Positions 51,431 through 64,000 of a stretch of DNA of 64,000 bases are shown here, one piece after another. The notes under the pieces were generated by a model that saw nothing but the letters and a program-made list of their open reading frames with translations, had not been told where the DNA came from and did not search any database. Source of the stretch: Orbicella franksi (taxonomy: Eukaryota); contig OZ116709.1 of assembly GCA_964199315.1 (NCBI GenBank), forward strand, positions 2,728,001 through 2,792,000, written 5' to 3'. The first letter of the stretch is position 1. Every line of letters begins with the position of its first letter. A program made the position numbers and the translations under genes.

Positions 51431-53293
51431 ATGGTAAGCCTTGAATTTTAATCTTCTCAAGGGTTGCTTAATTCTTTCAATCAAAAATCCATCGTTAATT
51501 CATCTGATCTGTTTTATTTCTTGTGGTTCTCTAACAGTCTGCGATCTTCAACTTCCAAAGTTTGCTCACAGTGGTTCTTTTGTTGATCTGTACATGTGCG
51601 TACATTCGCTCGATCTACCCAGCTCTCTTGGACAAGAACAAACACGGGTAAGAAACAGCAGCGTTCCGCAGTTTGATTCTGGTATTGTTTCTTTCCAGGC
51701 GGTTATTCGATAAAACGCTTTTGTATTATGAGTGGTTTTGTATGTGCTATGCTTTGATGACGTGGAACATCCGATGTACGATTTTGGAATTCGAAAACTG
51801 AGTTGGCTTATGGAAATTGAGTTTCTATTCACATTGTGACCTTCCTCATTGCGGTCAAGCTTTTTGGTTTCAATTGATGGCTCTTTGGTAGGAATTCATT
51901 TGTATGGGGCCTGGGGCTAATTTGATTATTGTTGAGACATGCTAGCAGCAACATAATCATGTTTGACCAGCTGTATTCAATCAACAGAAATCGATACTGG
52001 GAAATCAATTGACACAGTTGATATCAATTGAGGACTGCTATTCTTGTCTGTTGAAGCACCTTTCCCTATTAGACAGCGAGTTCTTGGCACAAGAAAAAGG
52101 TGGCTCTGAAGATGCATAAATTGATTGGCTAGTTTCTTGGAGTGAAATTTTCACTCATTTAAACTAATCATGACTAATAACTATTTTCTTTCTGAAATTA
52201 TCACTGGATCTGACTAAAACCATTTGAATTCAAGAAGTTTGAAACTGGTTTACAGGGATAATTTTCAGTGAAATCCTCCTTGATATTGATTGTTGACTAT
52301 TGGTTTATTGATTGACTATGCCTGGCCAGGTTGCTCGAAAGGTGGATAACATGCTATCCACGGGATAAATCACTATCCATCAGATAGTGTGGTTCTAAAA
52401 CTTATCCACCAGATGGTGATTTAAGCAATTGAGCCACCTAGCCTCAAGCAATTGAGGCTAGGTGTTCTAACATCAAAGAATCTTGCGCTCTGATCTTTGT
52501 CGAGGCTGTTTTCTTCATTACTTGTTACCAAATGATTAAAGCCAGGCAAGTTTTATTTTCATGGATAACTGTTAGTCAAAGAGCTTCACTGGCCTTTGTA
52601 TGGTTATTGTTTACTAGCCAACCCTGTCAGAAACAAGCCCTGTGCTTCGGTGTACCTGTCTCTTTTGTGACTAGTTGTCACATAAGGCCTCAAGCTCTGT
52701 TCTTGTCAGATATTGTTGTCCAGCATATCACATTGAACGGAATCAAATGAAGTTCCCCTCTTGAAGTGGACTGTTACTTGCAATATTTACTTCATGAAGA
52801 CTGTACGTACAAGGTATTATTCAAATACTTGGTACATGTAGCTTTTTACTGATCCTTGATTTTTTTTTTTCTACTTTACAGTTTATTAGGAATTTTTTGG
52901 AAAGCAGCAAGAATAGGTATAAAGAATTCCTGCTTCATTTCTGATATAAGTTGTAGCAGAATTTTCAGTTCAATGAATGTATGAGACTTAACAAAAGTCT
53001 GTAAATGCTTTAGGAAGTTAGAGACTTTGTATGGAAATGGTTATGATATTGACAACAGTTCATTTGGATAACTTCCTTGATCCAATGTAGCATGAATTTG
53101 TCTGACAACTCTTTCTATTTATCAGTTTACATTTCAAACCATTTGCTCCATTTATTACACATTTTTGTTTTATCAGCTCATTATATTGCACATTTCTAGT
53201 TAATTTTTTGCATCTCTCCTAGGTGAAAGAAAAAGTCCTTATGTTGCTATTTGTTGTATAGCCATGGCTGCCAGTATTTTGTTTTGGCAATGA
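51431..53293 (+). CDS. TMEM167A: Protein kish (TMEM167), 72 aa; absent from the ORF track
   Basis: Exons 51431-51433 (ATG|gtaagc), 51538-51647, 52882-52916, 53223-53293 give [72 protein letters not shown]. Confidence 0.95.
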
Positions 53294-55368: not shown

Positions 55369-58010
55369 CTATGATGAGACAACCACTTCTGTTGAGAAAA
55401 CAACTTCCATTCCTTGAAACCAGTTCAGCTCTGTCTGCTTTTTGTACAAGTTCTCAAAGGTGCGGATGTTTTTCTGCACAACCTCCAACTGGTGTGTGAT
55501 GTCTACAATCATTTTGGACTGAACCGTGTTCCCCAGGATCCCCCCATCATTTTGTGACATGGTACACAGCCTGGCAAACTCTTTTGCGATATTCTCTGGA
55601 GTCAGTTCCAATCCGGCATGACTCATAGTAGCTATGAGGCACTCAAATGCCATTGAGTCAACTTCCAACCACTTGGAGTTCTGTGCATCACTTTTTGGCA
55701 AAGGGCTGGTAAAGGTTAGACTTGGAAAACGACTCTTGATCACCTGAACTTTGTGTCTTGGTCGGAAACGACGTACCTGACGAGCTGGCTTGGTAGCCTT
55801 TGCCGCTTGAGCAGTGCCATATGGATTGCAACAGAGGTAACAGCGGCATCTGTGAGAGCAACCAGATGCATTTCTATAACAGGCACAACGTGTAAGATAG
55901 CCACCCTCTAGTGTCAGGCAGAACTGGGTGCGCTTCAGATTCTTTCCACTTCCCCTACCACAGCTACAAGAGAATGTCTGTTTCTGTATGTTTACACCCT
56001 CCTGGAAGCTCAAGACCATTTCACTGTCAAGAACCGATGGCTTGCTCTTGGGGGTGAGTGGTTCAGCACTGCTTGCATCATTGCCAGCTGAAACAGGTTC
56101 TGGGGTCATTCCTTCTGCATCTACTTCCAGTGATTCTTTATCCTCCCCATTGATTGCTTGATTAATGACATCCTCTGCTATGGTTTCCGTTGCAACATCT
56201 GGTTCAGTGACAGCTTCAGCTGTACTTCCTTCGGCAATGCTTTTTGGAGATACTACCTCTGATGTTTCTCCAGCAGAAGCAATGGTTCCTTGAGACACCA
56301 CCTCTGTTGTTTCTATAGTATTGGCAACATTTTCCTGAGATACTATCCCTGGTGTTTCGTTGGGACCTGTGGTAATCTGCTCATCCTGAGGATCTGGGTT
56401 TTGCAAACAAGCCTGTAGGTCCTCCTTGGTTTCTTGGTCAGTTGCTGGTAAAATTTCACCCGTTACAGCACTCTCTGTAATAGACTCCTCCATTGTCTCC
56501 TCATTCATACCTGCCTCACTGTAAGCCATTTCAAGGAGGTTTGCTGCAGCTTCTACTCCTTCATCGATATCATTTACTACTGCTGATGACTCCAATGAGG
56601 TTTCCCCTTCTGATTCTTGCACTGATGCATCCATGGATTTGTCTTGGTCAGTTATATCAGCTGAAGAGACATCCATGGAATCATCATGTTGTGAAGCAAC
56701 AGAATCATCAGCCTCTGCCTCAGTTTTGCCATCTTCATGGTTCTCTTCCTGAGAACCAGCTGTTTTGGGCTTCTTTCCTCTCTTCTTTGCTGGTTGATTG
56801 ACCTTCAGCAATGCCATCTTCTCTCTATATCGTTTCCTGCTATCTCTGCGCCTTGCCACGGGATCAGTCATCAGTTTTGGAAGCACAATGGAACTGCTAA
56901 CATATGTGCCAACATCATAAAACCCTCCAAAGCCTGCTGCATTGTATGCGACATGTATGCAAGAACCAATAATGATGGCATCTGATGGTACAACTGGGAC
57001 AATAGGAAAATGTTGAAGGGAAGTGAAGACAATGACTGGCACTTTTAAAACCTTTGCTGCTGCAATTGGCAGGAGATTTGACATTTCAGCTGAAAAAAAA
57101 GTAAAAATAATCTTAACTAATGTCTTCAGCAACTACAATGTGGGAAGACAAATGAACAGCACTTACTGCCTTTCTTGACAGGTTAAAGAGGAGCAGGACA
57201 CCTGATGCAGGTCACAGGGCTTCCCTATCAACTACGTTTTCACTTTTTCTCCAAATTCAATCATGGCAAACCCAAGCAACCAAACTAATGTTTAACACTT
57301 TTTTGTCAAAATATGGCTATTGCAAATGTTTAGAGTGCTGTTTTTCAGCAGCTACTTCATTTTACTGACTCACAGTATATTAGTATAAATCTAATAGTGT
57401 TCTATAACGAATGCCATTCTCTGATTGGCTACACTACTCACAATCTATTCTGTGATAGATAGTGAGTAGCATAGCAGTGTGCCCTTGGTAACAAAATGAC
57501 GGCTGCTTCTTGGCGTTTTTGAAGCGTCCGTGAAGAGGATTTAGATAAAGTTTTGAATGACTAGTAGATGACTAGTAGATTTTGGCTCTCGATTTCTATT
57601 GCATGATAGTTGACTTGGGCTGCAGCCTTGTCAGCTATTGTGTGATAGAAATCTCCAGCTCATAATCTAATTGGTTAATAGTTATTGATAATTATGGCTA
57701 ATAATGATTAACAAACTACATTTAGGATTAACTGAATTATTGGATTGGCGAAAATAAGACGTTCATCGATTAACTTGACCTAACCCAGTTGCTGACTATT
57801 GCCATTCTAACAATCTTTCTGGCCACACACTGAACCATTTTTCTGTAATACCAATCAGTACATAAGATTTTCATGTGGTCATTGTCAATGATCAGCCACT
57901 GGCTGTGCTGAAACATAGTTTCTAGTGACTTTGATAGCTCCCTTATAGTTTAACCATTCCCCAGTGGTTGTTAGCATAACCGACTGGCTGAACAGCAGGT
58001 GAATGTGCAG

Positions 58011-58042
<32 letters not shown>

Positions 58043-60891
58043 CCTCTGTATTTGGGTAGCTGCACTATTGTAAACAACGCATTGTATATTCTTTAGGTAT
58101 AATTAGGCTACGATTAGTAATTATAATTTGTTGTATGTAATCTATTGTAGTTATGACGTATTGTAAGTATTGTAACTAGTGTTATGTCTTGTGTTGTATT
58201 GTATGTATTATAACCCAAAATGTTGAAAAAAAATAAAAATTACAAAAAAAAAAAAAAAAAAAAAAAGGTGAATGTGCAGTCTGATTGGTTACACAGGGGC
58301 TGTCTGACTATTTCAACAGATGGCACTGTCTGGTCAATCAATAATTATTTAATTTCACATTTTTGTTAAGTTCATGATATATTAATATTTTTGGTCATGG
58401 ATCAAACCTTGGGTTATGCCAAGACAATTAGATTGCTTTATCTCTGTTTATGTTGATGTAGAAGGCATCCTTGAGCTTGCTGTCCGTCTAATAATTTTAA
58501 ATAGTCTAGCCACAGGTAACCCTGCTTGCAAAATGAGCATCTGTAATGAGGTTTTGCAACATTTTGCCACTCTTTAAAATACAGTTGCAATGATTGACTC
58601 ATACCTTTGAAGTATCCTCTTTTCCTGAATGCCTGAGCTTCTTCTGCAAAACTTATCATGTGTGAGACCAGAAGTTTGCTGTATTCTTCTTCACCTGCAA
58701 GCCACTCATCGCTGATCAACTGTCGCAGCACAGAAACATTTTCCTCTAGGCTGCTTCCTTCATCAGTGTGATATCCAATAGAGGCAAGGTGCTGTTTCAC
58801 TGATTCAGTTTCTGGCAAATCACTTCTCAGAATGGAGTCAAGCCCTGAACTGACTGCAGTGAAAAATCCATCTGCTTCAGTGGTATCCTTCTTTACAGAG
58901 AAGACCATCAACTGATAATATCTCAGTGTTTCATTCAGCCGTGTTTCATGATTTGATCTGTCATCAATAGCACATTCATTTCGGCTGAATAGGATCAAAG
59001 AACATGCCATAAGATGCATTAGACGAGGATTGATGGACACTTCATGCACGGCCTGTGTCTTTAGGATCTCCCATACTGACAGCAAATTGGATGCTCTTGC
59101 AATAACTTTCTTCAGAGCAGCCTCACTTAAACAGGTTTCACTGCCTTTTCCTTGGATCTCTGCCTCTCTGTTTCTACCAAATGCATCAAGTATCAAGCAC
59201 TGCAAAGCTAGAACATCAAAGGAGTAATTGGCAGAAGAGGAGTCATCATTTTCATCATCTTCAGCCTTGATAATCCCAAATCTTTCAGGACTTGGTGTGA
59301 ACCCACTGACTTCCAGCGTTCCCCTGTACTTTGATATTGGCCGGACAAGGGCACCTTTGGGTAATGAATTTGCTCTCCTCTCGTTCCACACGTAGAGAAG
59401 TGTTGAAATAAGGGCTAAGGCCATGTCGGCATTTAGGAACTTCCTCTCCAAGACAGGCTTCAAAATGTTGTGCAGCTCATCAATATTTTCACTTCCTGGA
59501 GAGGCTGGGATTTCTGACAGACATCCTGATTCTATATGAGTTCTTAGCTGTACGATCTGTCTCTGTGCTGCCAGAGTTAACACCCGCTCATTCCCTTCAA
59601 TGATGTCTTTCCAACCATCCACAAAGGCATCAAGGTTTTCAGAGATGACATCTGGTGGAGGTGTTGCTTCATTGCGGATGTCTCCCCTGTCTGTTGGGTA
59701 ACGCAAGGCCAGGGCGAAGTCACGAACACAAGCTTTGGTCAGCGGATTCTCTTCTCTTTTCTTTGCAGGGATTTTCCTCACAACTCTGTGAACTGCTTTT
59801 GACAATTCAAGTTTGACTGGGACCTCTATGCCATATGTTGCATTAAATTGGTCTCTGGTTTCACAACATTCTGGCACAAGAGCCATCTCCAGTTGTCTGC
59901 CTTGCCTCTCAAAACGTTGCTGCAGTCCTGCCAGGATGTCTTTCACATCATTTAGATCTTTTTCTTTGGTAAACTTCCAGGCTATCACCTGACCCTTTTC
60001 ATTCATGACTGTGTACATGTTCTTAAAATGGGTGATCCATTTTCCAGCTGTCTCCAGTTTTTCACCGATTGTTGTCGCTACTTTAAAGTAGTATCCAGCA
60101 GTAATGCGTTTGGCTGGCCATTCACTCATTCTCTGTATGTAGAACTGCTCATTGCCTTCAAACATGTGCACTATGCTTGACATTGTTGTCTCCAAAGAAG
60201 GAACTTGGGAAGTCTTGAACTCAGGAAATGCTTCCACAGCTGACTGATTTTCTGGATTCTTTTCAAGATATGACTTGACTTCCGCATCAAACTTACATCT
60301 GCGTTCTTCATAAGCATCTCGGTGCCTTTGCATCAAAACCTCTTCAATCTCGTGAAAGGTCATACCAGCAAGCACACAAGAATGGACCCAGGTGGCTAAC
60401 TCATGGGTAAAACCTGTTCTGTGTAACAGATAAAATGGGACTTGATATGATGAGGGAATGTTCTCCATGAGTCGTGGATCATGAGATATTATCTTGTGGC
60501 CTTTCTTGCAGGTATACAAGCGACTCACCAACAGTGTACAGCCATCACAGCAGTAAAGGGCCCTGGGAATATCCTGTGTTCCTCTAGAAGCCTTCCACCT
60601 TCCATAATTACCCTTGTTACTTGTGTGTGCCCTAAGCACACAGACTTCATTATCATGGATTTCATGAGGACAGGCTAACTCTGTCAGATTTGGAACTTGG
60701 TTTAAAGGATCCCAGAGAATAACTGCAGGTACAAGGAACTCAGCGGGTGTTGGAGGACCCAACCTCTCTCTTGGAACTGGAACTGGTGGGAGAATGGCTT
60801 CAGCAGGAAGTCCACCATCTGTTGCATCATACCTCTGCAGGAGTGACGTGAGGTAATCTGCTGTCTCAACATTCATTCCTTCCCTTTGCAT
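55369..60891 (-). CDS. Intact ~1,335-aa protein: Zisupton/KDZ-like transposase fold, OTU-like domain, acidic linker and CXC zinc cluster; probable domesticated transposon gene
   Basis: Coding exons (-) 60891-58605 and 57089-55369, joined in phase 1 (AAAG|gtatga ... ttttcag|CT); total 4008 nt. Motifs LWDP..LACP, PR.L....LLVSRLYTC..GH, VPS, MNEKGQVI, ECC, VKLELSKAVHR, GSENIDELH follow the Zisupton-type order. OTU-like LRQL..DEW...Y, AKVL.VP.IVFTS, VAY...GFYD. CXC CSCG...C...RC.C...C..RCRC..C.NP. Confidence 0.8.
57398..57685. repeat. Interspersed repeat ending in ttggttaata (intron of the transposase-like gene)
   Basis: The terminus is the reverse complement of tattaaccaa seen at 36335. Confidence 0.5.
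58013..58266. mobile_element. Retrotransposed insertion with T30 at one end, A23 at the other, and a 15-17-bp TSD
   Basis: ggtgaatgtgcagtc at 57998-58012 and 58267-58281. AATAAA at 58232-58237 precedes the A tract. Confidence 0.85.
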
Positions 60892-61840
60892 CTTGGAGTG
60901 CACTGAAATATTAAAAAGCTGATTTCATACATGTACTTGAAGTAAATACATGTCTATTCCTTCCAAGACAAGTATATTGTTGGTAGGGTGCTATTCTGAG
61001 TGGAAGAGGGGTTGGTACAGGTGGGTGATGTGTTACCAGTAACTCTATACATGTGCTCTGAAAAAACCAGAATTTTTTGGTTGAAACTTCAATTTACATC
61101 ATCAAAGTAATGATAGTAGAGGGGGTTAAATGCATGGACAGCATTAAAATATGCATAAACCCCAAGATCACAGGGCTTTCCTAAGCTGAACTGAGATCCA
61201 ATTAAACTAAGTGCTTTGATCTATTTAGACTTGACCCTCTGCAGGCACTTTTAAAACATTTTCGACCATTCTTAACCACGTGAAACCGCACACCTATAAA
61301 CTAGAACCAGTAAAATATCTCAGCCGCGCTTGATTTTAAGAAACGCGCAAAACGGCTGAAAAACTGATATCTTCTAGCTTCGCTAGCGCTTTTAATCAAG
61401 ACGCAAATATATCTCAACACAGATAGGAGAAAAGCTTTCCATTGACATAATTTCAAACCATCGACAACAAGCCGCAACTAAAGTTCTGAAATTTTCCATA
61501 TTCCTGGCGGCAACAGCCACAATGAAAGGAAAATTTAGCATTAATTCGTTGGCTCCATGACAAATCTACTTAGCTAATAACTACTTTCTCATCCGGCGAC
61601 ACAAAAGCTTCCCAATAGCTACAAAATAAACGTGTAGGCAGATGAAACAGCGGACATGAAGCACTTGCCACGTGCGAAAAACTGAACCACTTTCATGAGG
61701 CCTACATGTTGGCTAGTTTGCATATCGGTTAACACCTTTTTTTCCACTTTTGCTCTCTCTTCACGAAAATGCCCGCACAAATCGATGAAAGATACTGATA
61801 AATGTTATTTTTTCCCATTTAAGAAGGGAACGGACCTTAC

Positions 61841-62011
61841 CTTAAGGTTATTTTTCACAAAATTGATCTGCTTATGGCGGAAACATCACGACTCCATGTG
61901 AAGCGTGAACGAAAGTTGCTCAAGGGGCGGATGCCAAGCAGGAGCGGCTGCTATGTCTCCAAATAATCACAAGTGCATAGCTATAACACTAACCTTTGCC
62001 ATGTCATCCAG
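61841..62011. promoter_or_regulatory. Candidate bidirectional promoter/5' UTR zone between the transposase-like gene (-) and GXYLT (+)
   Basis: Strong minus-strand donor AAG|GTAAGG at 61841/61840. YY1/ETS-like atggcggaa at 61874. Plus-strand branch site actaac (61988) and acceptor at 62011 immediately before the GXYLT ATG. Confidence 0.5.
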
Positions 62012-64000
62012 ATGGGATTTAAAATCATTTCTAAGATAGCAGTTGCTTTAAGCATAGTTTTAGTAATAGTAGTTCTACTGGAATTTGCGTTGCTGAATTT
62101 ATACGTAAAAGAAACAGATGCGAACTTTCCCAAGGGAGCACACCCAGAAAGTACACCGGAAAATAGTATCGATGGAGTTGTCAACCTTGTCACGAAAGAC
62201 CCAAGGAATATCATGGCAACTTCATCACGAAAAGAAACAGGAGTCGAGTGGGACAAAGTCAAAACGGACGAGACAAAAAGGTAACTGTTTCAGTTAGCAA
62301 TCAAGCAAGCTAGCTAGTCTGACAGTTTAATTCTCGATTTTGGATTTCACTCCTGTTAGGTATTAAAGTTGTAGACAAAACAGAAACAAAATTACCTTTA
62401 TTTTTCTATCGGGTAAAGTAGGTTTTGTTTTCTTTCACTGAAACATCTCAACTTATATAGAAACGTATGAAGGATAAAACAACAACCTTTATTATTCTTG
62501 TTTGTACTACCCGAGGGTACACCCGAGGGTATAAATGGGAGAACCAGTAAACTGTCAAGGCAACCATGGTAGCTAAAATTATATGGGGTGGGGGGATCTT
62601 ACTAAACAGGCACTCCGAGGAAGTTGCTTTGTGTTTTGGAAACCAGAGTTTATGAGCCATGTAAGCTTGTAGTCAGATGTAAACTTTCTATTCATCCAGT
62701 CTGAGGTAGGTTATTCAAAATAATGTACAGAAAAAGACCTATCATCCATTGAACTGGTTAAGGTCTTCTTTATCTTATGAAAAGACATTTGGTATTCTCT
62801 CCACAGAACATTCACACCAAATCCTGTTGTTCACGTAAGTGCTGTGGTATGTGGAGAGCGATCAATGGAAGCTGCAACGATGCTCAAGTCCACATCATTG
62901 CTCACGAATAGAACAGTTCAGTTTCACATTGTTGCCGAGGATCACCTTCATGGTGAACTCAAAGACATATTCAGTGAATGGCAGACTGTTCAATCTGGAC
63001 AAGTCAGGTTCAAACTGTACTCTTTGCACTTTCCTCCTGGAGAAAATGCTGGGGAGTGGAAACGACTTTTCAAGCCATGTGCAGCACAGAGACTTTTTCT
63101 TTTAGTGAGTATACTGCCAATGCACATGCCATACAAATTCCTAATTGAGACACTGGTGTAAAAAGTGAAAAGTTTAAACTAGCTTGCAGTAAAGGCTTAT
63201 ATTATGCAGGGGAATCTTTTCGAGTTTAAACTCATCCATATTAATTTGTTTAATCATGACCTTGGGAAAGGCGCATAAGGGATTGTGGAGCTGGTCGAGA
63301 AAAGAGTCTCAAGGTGAGCACGCAGGTATCCATGATAACCCACATACTTATTACAGCCAGCAAAGGGGAGGGCCAGAGGTGAGGGAGCAAAGGCACACTA
63401 CAAGCACAGTTGACAATCAAAGCAACTAGATTTCCTTACAAAGCTGGAAAGGAAACCACATAAGCCCTGCAAAACCTTGTATGACTCACCCCTAAGAGCT
63501 TGGGCTGTTGATTAGCATTAGCTTGATTCAAGCTTAGCCTAAATTTTATTCAATTAAATTAAAATTGCATTTCATTATTTTAGCTGCATATAAAAGTGGC
63601 ACTAACAATGTTTCCCAATCAGCCTCCAGTGCAAAATGGAATATTTAATGTTGTGCATTTTTATCTATAATCTTGAAATTACTAACTTACCGGTGCTGGA
63701 CAAGTAATCAACTACAGCTAGATTTTTAAGTAACTGTAGCATTAATTTTTTTAATCCCTACAGGATGTACTAGATTCTGTTGACAGCATTCTGTACTTGG
63801 ACACAGATGTTCTTTTGCTCAGACCAGTGGAAGATCTTTGGAACCATTTTAAACATTTTGATTCTGCGCAGCTTGCTTCCATGGCACCTGAGCATGAGGA
63901 GGCAGCACTGTCATGGTATCCGAGATTTGCACGTCATCCATTTTTTGGAAAAACTGGAGTGAACTCTGGTGTAATGCTCATGAATTTAACAAGAATGCGA
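62012..64000 (+). CDS. GXYLT1: Glucoside xylosyltransferase (GT8 family, type II membrane protein), 5' part
   Basis: Exons 62012-62280, 62807-63104, 63764->64000. N-terminal signal-anchor. Motifs VVCGERSME...[25 protein letters not shown] (DxD), APEHE....[32 protein letters not shown]1 and GXYLT2 cannot be distinguished. Confidence 0.92.

Follow-up and report, generated by a model that had tools for sequence, protein, structure and literature searches.

A probable transposase-derived host gene with replaced DDE and OTU catalytic residues in Orbicella franksi and other Hexacorallia

Transposases captured by their hosts have given rise to regulators and recombinases, among them RAG1, FHY3/FAR1, CENP-B and PGBD5. 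The plant proteins FHY3/FAR1 and MUSTANG are domesticated Mutator-like transposases that act as transcription factors; in these whole-transposase domestications the zinc-finger DNA binding and the core fold were retained and mobility was lost. To our knowledge, few transposase domestications have been documented in cnidarians, and no relevant paper on a cnidarian domestication of the kind described here, nor any for the family involved, was found in the searchable literature. The gene under study is located on the minus strand, at positions 55369 to 60891, of a 64,000-nucleotide stretch of the coral Orbicella franksi (GenBank assembly GCA_964199315.1, contig OZ116709.1, positions 2,728,001 to 2,792,000; the whole stretch is hereafter called the window). 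A preliminary description of this DNA had read it as a domesticated Zisupton/KDZ-like transposase gene with an inactivated catalytic core.

The origin of this host gene from a transposase was upheld by the replacement of all catalytic positions of the DDE core, by purifying selection and by synteny, and a domestication with dead catalysis is highly probable. We hold with good confidence that it is a single-copy host gene made from the complete protein of a cut-and-paste transposon, in which both active sites were erased and the scaffold and DNA-binding parts were kept under selection. Dead domesticated transposases are a well-known kind; the coral gene is a new and well-supported example, which stems from an undescribed source family and has a second dead enzyme in addition. 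The plant FHY3/FAR1 and MUSTANG proteins differ from the coral protein in belonging to another kingdom, in their independent origin and in having neither a second dead enzyme (OTU) nor a CXC domain. The gene is an unusually clean case, as the whole five-module transposon protein has been retained and the losses are aimed at two active sites.

Catalytic sites and conservation of the locus

Two long open reading frames (ORFs) are carried by the minus strand, 58438-60903 (821 amino acids, aa) and 55369-57132 (587 aa). Joining 60891-58605 to 57089-55369 yields a coding sequence of 4008 nt, with 1335 codons and its sole stop at the end:

58605..60891, minus strand: coding exon A, with the ATG at 60891; codons 1-762 and the first base of codon 763
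57090..58604, minus strand: intron, phase 1, GT..AG, 1515 nt, from the sequence and RNA sequencing (RNA-seq)
55369..57089, minus strand: coding exon B, from the rest of codon 763 to codon 1335; stop at 55371-55369

The donor, AAAG followed by GTATGAGT, lies inside the first ORF at 58605/58604, and the acceptor, ttttttttcag followed by CT, at 57090/57089, with a polypyrimidine tract and AG ahead of the second ORF. In coral poly(A) RNA-seq data, the joint 57089->58605 (CT..AC on the plus strand, that is, GT..AG on the gene strand) was found in nine reads of run X23, three reads of run X24 and one transcript contig of run X3. Both exons were covered at roughly 5-15x in run X23, and the intron was without coverage except for two repeat-derived peaks. 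The junction is also crossed uninterrupted by the transcript-derived orthologues P0008 (1320 aa) and P0010 (1283 aa); the cluster of the latter includes Acropora proteins with the NCBI annotation 'uncharacterized', and NCBI lists the orthologues only as uncharacterized proteins. The uninterrupted two-exon frame of about 1335 aa with canonical splice sites, as first described, was confirmed in this way, and the expression support sought for it was obtained from spliced reads and a contig crossing the intron and from the coverage of both exons.

The protein of the window comprises the following parts:

60142..60744, minus strand: N-terminal module, aa 50-250; Pfam DUF6729 match in relatives
59332..60120, minus strand: RNase-H-like DDE core with an alpha-helical insertion domain, aa 258-520; AlphaFold predicted local distance difference test (pLDDT) above 90
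56872..58959, minus strand: predicted pseudo-OTU domain, aa ~645-835, split by the intron; alignment to relatives
56764..56853, minus strand: basic stretch, aa 842-871, with two R/K clusters; resembles a bipartite nuclear localisation signal
56002..56763, minus strand: acidic, Ser/Thr/Ala-rich linker that looks disordered
55819..55974, minus strand: CXC zinc domain, aa 1135-1186; family alignment
55372..55665, minus strand: C-terminal three-helix domain, aa 1238-1320, and conserved hydrophobic/acidic tail, aa 1321-1335; common to intact transposon relatives

Exon A spans the N-terminal zinc module, the whole dead DDE core and the start of the pseudo-OTU domain, which is completed in exon B; the basic stretch, the linker, the CXC domain and the helical tail are likewise on exon B. 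Aligned with its relatives, the protein shows replacements at each of the catalytic sites:

60088..60096, minus strand: first Asp; family D-H-T replaced by G266-Y-Y (strand b1)
59872..59874, minus strand: second Asp; family D in [VI]D[ND]CC (just after b4) replaced by P340, the next two Cys retained
59797..59808, minus strand: D(2)H motif after b5; family D-L-F-H replaced by E362-L-S-K365
59479..59481, minus strand: third site; family E of N-E-x-x-H replaced by D471, the preceding N by I470
58867..58869, minus strand: OTU Cys loop; family D-G-N-C replaced by E-A-D-G, with G675 at the Cys position
within 56914..56934, minus strand: OTU His; family G-H-Y-D replaced by G-F-Y-D

In the profile alignment of all fetched proteins, nearly all members carry DHTFK, [VI]D[ND]CC, KLD.FHA, NE..H and the OTU motif G[DN]C. 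Conservation among 59 aligned members with intact motifs is complete at the second D, at the D(2)H pair and at the E, and exceeds 90% in DHTFK. The core replacements claimed earlier (G-Y-Y, VP, LELSK and E to D) were all recovered, in place, by this alignment. Beyond that claim, the OTU protease of the ancestral transposon protein is also dead: its Cys is replaced by G or S and its His by F in all hexacoral orthologues that cover both sites. Position 471 is A or D in the other coral orthologues, and the Asn before it has been lost in every orthologue.

A set of 63 sites was at least 85% conserved among 145 relatives, nearly all with intact motifs. The window protein retains 47 of them. Of the 16 that it has lost, 13 belong to the four DDE motifs or to the OTU Cys loop, and the other three are changes of Phe to Ile, Tyr or Leu. 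Retained family sites include the N-terminal Cys/His residues, the CC beside the lost second Asp, D401, R406, T410, H452 and G-C-L-S. As the losses are concentrated in this way and the scaffold and CXC cysteines are kept, they are targeted at catalysis and do not represent general decay. At the level of the aligned residues it is shown that both enzyme centres, DDE and OTU, are destroyed, and the predicted protein cannot use the DDE or OTU chemistry of its family. The OTU region is read as a pseudo-OTU domain, with its scaffold and flanking motifs retained. The same scaffold is known from the OTU deubiquitinases (OTUD2/3/5, A20, OTUB1/2), from which the window protein differs in having Gly in place of the catalytic Cys and Phe in place of the His.

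An AlphaFold model of exon A, built with 95 aligned sequences, had a mean pLDDT of 86.7. Residues 262-361 fold in the model as b1-b2-b3-a1-b4-a2-b5, the order of RNase-H-like folds, with residue 266 on b1, 340 immediately after b4, 362-365 after b5, and 471 on the helix that follows an all-helical insertion (376-454). In the model, the lost residues stand where a DDE triad and its D(2)H motif are canonically found.

The other structured parts are equally traceable to the family. The N-terminal module retains the family-conserved W60, P62, C74, R110, C128 and H132, and is presumed to bind zinc and DNA. All nine family-invariant cysteines are present in the CXC domain, and the CXC profile of the family matches the CXC of MSL2 (E 8.8e-8). 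The nine-cysteine zinc cluster of MSL2 and LIN54/tesmin is therefore found also in the window protein, here as a C-terminal module of a transposase family. A local iterative search showed homology between the C-terminal module (CXC and some 130 residues) and the C-termini of over 50 members (E 1e-22 to 1e-53). Since this module and the other domains all have homologues in family members, all structured parts come from the transposon protein; that the CXC domain and the tail are likewise inherited from it goes beyond the preliminary description. In a model of the C-terminal part (pLDDT 79), a compact zinc-knot region is accompanied by a domain of three helices. This model gave no significant match in the PDB; its best Foldseek matches there, below significance, were DNA-bound LIN54 and MSL2 CXC structures.

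The linker (24% D+E and 3% K+R in aa 881-1125) was matched, among the proteins fetched, only in scleractinian orthologues, and no match to it was found in the Nematostella orthologue. Judging from these comparisons, the linker (about aa 872-1125) is the sole addition to the transposon-derived protein. The basic stretch may act as a nuclear localisation signal. Pfam found nothing in either exon of the window gene, and its homology was recognised through sequence searches only.

No inverted repeats flank the gene, in agreement with the lack of terminal inverted repeats in the preliminary description and as expected for a domesticated copy, and no second copy was detected elsewhere in the window by DNA or protein matches. 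Two host genes stand beside it:

61973..63161, plus strand: GXYLT-like glycosyltransferase (GT8), first two exons (exon 1, 61973-62284); head-to-head with the gene
51535..53293, plus strand: TMEM167 (Kish), three very small exons (51535-51652, ~52880-52920 and 53219-53293)

TMEM167 lies tail-to-tail with the gene and converges on its 3' end. By tBLASTx, the GXYLT exons are collinear upstream of the orthologue in two corals (L001 and L002), in the host of P0013 (L010) and in Nematostella (L003), where the orthologue is head-to-head with a GT8 glycosyltransferase gene. TMEM167 is found downstream of the gene in the window, in both corals and in Nematostella, and MYG1 lies beyond GXYLT in L001. 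The predicted synteny of orthologues with GXYLT and TMEM167 was therefore found on both sides in two corals and in Nematostella. In L003 the TMEM167 exons are present though no gene is called there in the annotation table.

A maximum-likelihood phylogeny of the core (LG+C20, 487 columns, 72 proteins) unites the proteins with dead catalysis in a clade with 100/100 support: the window protein, six coral orthologues, P0013, Nematostella P0018 (A7S9E4/XP_001631754, 1040 aa) and P0019. In the unrooted tree this clade is flanked by intact members. In all its proteins the first Asp has become Gly and the second has become Pro or Ala, from which it follows that inactivation predates the divergence of the clade. 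The transposon was captured before stony corals and sea anemones diverged, and the gene has stood between GXYLT and TMEM167 since. As Scleractinia and Actiniaria parted in the early Palaeozoic or before, the gene would have been fixed as a host gene for several hundred million years. Outside Hexacorallia no orthologue was found, and a restriction of the domestication to this lineage is supported.

The ratio of nonsynonymous to synonymous substitution rates (dN/dS) was estimated by the Nei-Gojobori method against two coral orthologues with 81-84% protein identity. The overall value was 0.14 (0.139 and 0.140), well below 1 as had been predicted, and no structured domain exceeded 0.19; all these values are approximate. 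By region they were:

N-terminal module: 0.09-0.11
Dead core: 0.11-0.13
Pseudo-OTU domain: 0.03-0.10
CXC domain: 0.01-0.02, the most constrained part
C-terminal domain: 0.12-0.19
Acidic linker: 0.35, the least constrained part

Source family and comparison with described transposases

A profile search of 1.84 billion cluster representatives (clusters at 50% identity) returned 3962 representatives at E<=1e-3 and 590 at E<=1e-30; the former number is as expected of a transposon family. Searches with exon A recovered orthologues whose identity grades from 99% to 78%, then P0013 at 47%, and further relatives at 29-30%; matches to intact members had E values of 1e-53 to 1e-58. The window protein is 22-34% identical to intact and distant relatives. 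Members of the family share an architecture of DUF6729 zinc module, DDE RNase-H-like core, OTU protease, CXC zinc domain and helical tail; in Pfam terms, the relatives have DUF6729 (PF20499) at the N-terminus, OTU or otubain after the core and an MSL2/tesmin-type CXC near the C-terminus. Catalytically intact relatives with this same architecture occur in the cnidarians Exaiptasia, Dendronephthya and Paramuricea and in coral metagenomes.

A Pfam census of the 59 intact members (E<=10, with 25 of 65 families shown) gave OTU (PF02338) in 24 and otubain (PF10275) in 18 of them; MSL2-CXC was found in 15 and TCR in 10. Matches of the core were below threshold: DDE_Tnp_ISL3 in nine of the 59 (best E 0.0031), MULE in two and Transposase_mut in two. 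Intact relatives also match solved OTU structures. It is defensible, on these sequence comparisons, to regard the source as a distinct, large and so far unnamed DDE family, for which DUF6729-DDE-OTU-CXC is used as a working name. No paper on DUF6729 was found in the searchable literature. The case also brings into view a very large family of eukaryotic transposases for which the only part covered by a Pfam model is DUF6729, at the N-terminus. The mobility of its intact members is deduced from family size and conserved catalytic residues only.

Two further observations concern members of the family. The intact member P0017/P0194, present in coral metagenome contigs (L005-L009), has 796 aa and a downstream ORF of 297 aa; the five contigs, which come from different samples, probably represent one locus, and this may be a fixed and still catalytically intact copy instead of a mobile one. 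A second lineage comprises Nematostella P0076 (LOC5514795 / A7S029) and its relatives P0054 and P0078. It has degenerate DDE motifs (CDSSFS, LDPNCC and KMGIVHA) and an intact OTU catalytic Cys, and may be an independent domestication that retained the deubiquitinase.

With regard to the family label given in the preliminary description, Zisupton is said to have been named for its Ulp1 SUMO protease, and HMGXB3 is reportedly a host gene made from a Zisupton-type transposase. The Zisupton/KDZ transposases resemble the present family in being large DDE transposases of eukaryotes that have cysteine clusters at the N-terminus and often a protease as well. They differ in carrying PF18758, where the window family has DUF6729, OTU and CXC. 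True Zisupton proteins, the original element included, carry this KDZ domain (PMC9297572), and Zisupton target duplications are of 8 bp (PMC12730594).

The KDZ question was addressed by Pfam scans and fold searches. PF18758 was not reported at E<=1 in the window exons, nor at E<=1 in the orthologues and three intact relatives, nor at E<=0.1 in nine further relatives, and it was absent from the families shown in the 59-member census; for the relatives scanned singly, this negative covers the 10 whose hits were itemised. Among the Pfam families reported there was no KDZ CxC family (CxC1-CxC6), the N-terminus being DUF6729; Ulp1 was not listed in the census, and the appended protease was OTU/otubain.

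The best solved structure matched by the exon A model was the IS256-family ISCth4 transposase 6XGX (E 9.6e-8, template modelling score, TM, by target 0.49-0.54). In the AlphaFold/Swiss-Prot fold search, IS1081, IS905 and IS256 were recovered at E 7e-9 to 1e-7, together with IS1001 and then the P element and hAT. The ESM Atlas shape search gave DUF6729 clusters first, followed by Transposase_mut, MULE and ISL3 clusters (TM by hit 0.54-0.63), and listed no KDZ cluster. With language-model features, KDZ clusters scored 0.78-0.79, below the Mutator-like value of 0.81. In the AlphaFold cluster library, the top match was LOC116308079, an uncharacterized protein of 1054 aa with 33% identity over nearly the whole model, which is probably an orthologue. 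Foldseek against the AlphaFold clusters also returned two fungal 'CxC5 ... KDZ' proteins (E 9.5e-21, query 8-714, and 4.5e-19), as well as uncharacterized fish and Ciona proteins at about 15% identity.

In the proposed comparison of folds with KDZ proteins, the fungal KDZ-associated proteins are, by model, distant structural relatives of the window protein, and the nearest fold is that of IS256/Mutator/ISL3. The Zisupton/KDZ label is not supported, given the lack of PF18758 and CxC reports, the OTU protease in place of Ulp1 and the IS256/Mutator/ISL3 fold.

The family shares a broad structural class with the IS256/Mutator/ISL3 transposases, which is a shared class and not membership. An RNase-H core with an all-helical insertion domain is common to the window family and to the IS256, Mutator (MULE) and ISL3 transposases, ISCth4 included. 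The layout D ... D ... [C/D]xxH ... E that is said to characterize the Mutator-like and hAT-type transposases is also found in the window family. On the other hand, identity is about 10%, the domains PF00872, PF10551 and PF01610 all remain below threshold, and the DUF6729, OTU and CXC modules are extra in the window family; the window protein, unlike those transposases, is without every catalytic residue.

HMGXB3 was considered as a possible orthologue and rejected. No HMG box was matched in the Pfam scans of the window exons, the orthologues and three intact relatives, HMGXB3 was not among the 30 AlphaFold/Swiss-Prot fold matches listed, and the orthologues found were from Hexacorallia only. 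The independence from HMGXB3 that had been suggested earlier agrees with the first two of these results.

Proposed function and alternative explanations

The strongest preservation is seen in the CXC domain, the pseudo-OTU domain, the N-terminal zinc module and the core scaffold. The most likely function appears to be that of a nuclear adaptor binding DNA or chromatin. In this proposal the protein would no longer cut DNA or ubiquitin and would work as a nuclear scaffold. Its N-terminal zinc module, dead RNase-H core and CXC domain would bind DNA, as in MSL2 and LIN54, where CXC is a DNA-binding module. The pseudo-OTU domain would offer a non-cleaving binding surface for ubiquitin, a ubiquitin-like mark or a partner, and the acidic linker and C-terminal helices would recruit other chromatin or transcription factors. 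The mechanism as a whole is given an even chance. The locus is fixed from corals to Nematostella (LOC5511341), in which knock-down, chromatin immunoprecipitation and localisation are feasible.

Several points weigh against the interpretation as a dead, domesticated transposase with a nuclear role. Nuclear localisation, DNA binding and ubiquitin binding are all deduced from homology. The change of E to D471 is conservative, though other orthologues have A there. Copy number was assessed in this window and, indirectly, through the protein database. The dS values, about 0.9-1.0, are close to saturation and make the dN/dS values approximate. The intact relative P0194, in five contigs of different samples, has identical neighbours and no terminal inverted repeats.

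That the gene might be a decaying or recently immobilised transposon copy, that is, a pseudogene or selfish element without host function, could be argued from the transposon derivation of all its domains and from the huge size of the family. Against it, 1335 codons are intact, dN/dS is 0.14 and the losses are confined to catalytic sites; the same locus is kept from corals to Nematostella, the mRNA is spliced and polyadenylated, and inverted repeats are lacking. The chance of this explanation is close to nil. It is very improbable, too, that the protein is still an enzyme which cleaves DNA through substitute residues or puts its OTU fold to another hydrolytic use. In favour of this, D471 and E362 are still acidic, and D401 is retained and conserved family-wide; both metal-holding aspartates (on b1 and after b4), nevertheless, are replaced by G266 and P340, residue 471 alternates between A and D among coral orthologues next to an Asn that none of them retains, and the alignment offers no nearby replacement for the OTU Cys (G or S) or His (F). 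Both explanations were rejected on the evidence of frame, selection, synteny and active sites.

A host gene could also have been kept as a repressor of active transposon relatives, binding their ends or pairing with their transposase, in the way in which the KP repressor blocks P element transposition. Intact relatives of the same architecture do exist in the cnidarians named above, and what is conserved in the protein is its DNA-binding modules and a dimer-forming core, as this explanation would have it. The gene, however, is older than the split between corals and anemones, and its identity to the intact and distant relatives amounts to only 22-34%. Given the rapid turnover of transposon ends, a fixed repressor would soon be left with no target, and competition for end binding needs no strong constraint on the pseudo-OTU domain and the tail. 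Repression of relatives is accordingly regarded as improbable, and the adaptor function is preferred.

The age of the capture may be greater than the hexacoral clade indicates. Three long-branched proteins, one of them from Rhopilema (LOC135687599), have the DDE residues and the OTU Cys replaced at the aligned positions and retain DUF6729, CXC and the tail. The best tree does not place them as sisters of the hexacoral clade. When they were forced together with that clade, the resulting tree was not rejected (approximately unbiased test, p-AU 0.74) and had a likelihood above that of the quick free search. In a jellyfish contig (L004), the gene at 10001-13669 encodes a Rhopilema-type protein of 1222 aa with DUF6729 and CXC, in which other residues stand at the aligned positions of the first and second DDE residue, of the catalytic Glu, of the D(2)H His and of the OTU Cys. 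This locus adjoins a gene for an LSG1-type GTPase and not GXYLT, and one public gene model fuses the gene with the GTPase.

Rhopilema LOC135687599 and its relatives could be fast-evolving orthologues of the hexacoral gene. The grouping of the long-branched jellyfish-type proteins is open to two readings, a single pan-cnidarian capture or long-branch attraction. It is possible, though on balance doubtful, that the capture was very old, perhaps pan-cnidarian, that the two enzymes were made pseudoenzymes together, and that the product is a DNA-anchored reader of a ubiquitin or ubiquitin-like mark on chromatin.

Transcript start, flanking block and intron

Two additional features were recorded upstream of the coding sequence:

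60892..60904, minus strand: 5' untranslated start of exon A, 13 nt 5' of the ATG, directly after an AG acceptor (tttcag followed by TGCAC)
61626..61931, no strand assigned: block between the gene and GXYLT, conserved with L001 (~61626-61931) and partly with L002 (~61634-61931)

The match of a transcript contig to the genome ends at 60904, at the AG acceptor, and 43 extra letters of the contig were not located there. This break fits an upstream non-coding exon, the joint of which was itself not seen. The block is a candidate for a shared promoter and untranslated first exon of the divergent gene pair. The non-coding first exon placed beside GXYLT in the preliminary description is in part corroborated, by the contig break and by the conserved block, and its splice joint is the part that was not recovered.

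Within the intron, a perfect 17-nt direct repeat, AGGTGAATGTGCAGTCT, is found at 57997-58013 and at 58266-58282, around an insert of 252 nt. On the plus strand the insert has a run of about 30 T at its start and a run of about 23 A at its end. The repeat resembles the target-site duplication of a small intronic insertion, and the RNA contigs include the piece 58054-58223. Another intron segment, 57300-57700, reaches a summed contig depth of thousands in the RNA runs, compared with about 40 for the exons, and shows many loose ends and an opposite-strand joint (57455/57533). This segment is a dispersed and abundantly transcribed repeat outside the mRNA of the gene, and it probably has an inverted-repeat structure.

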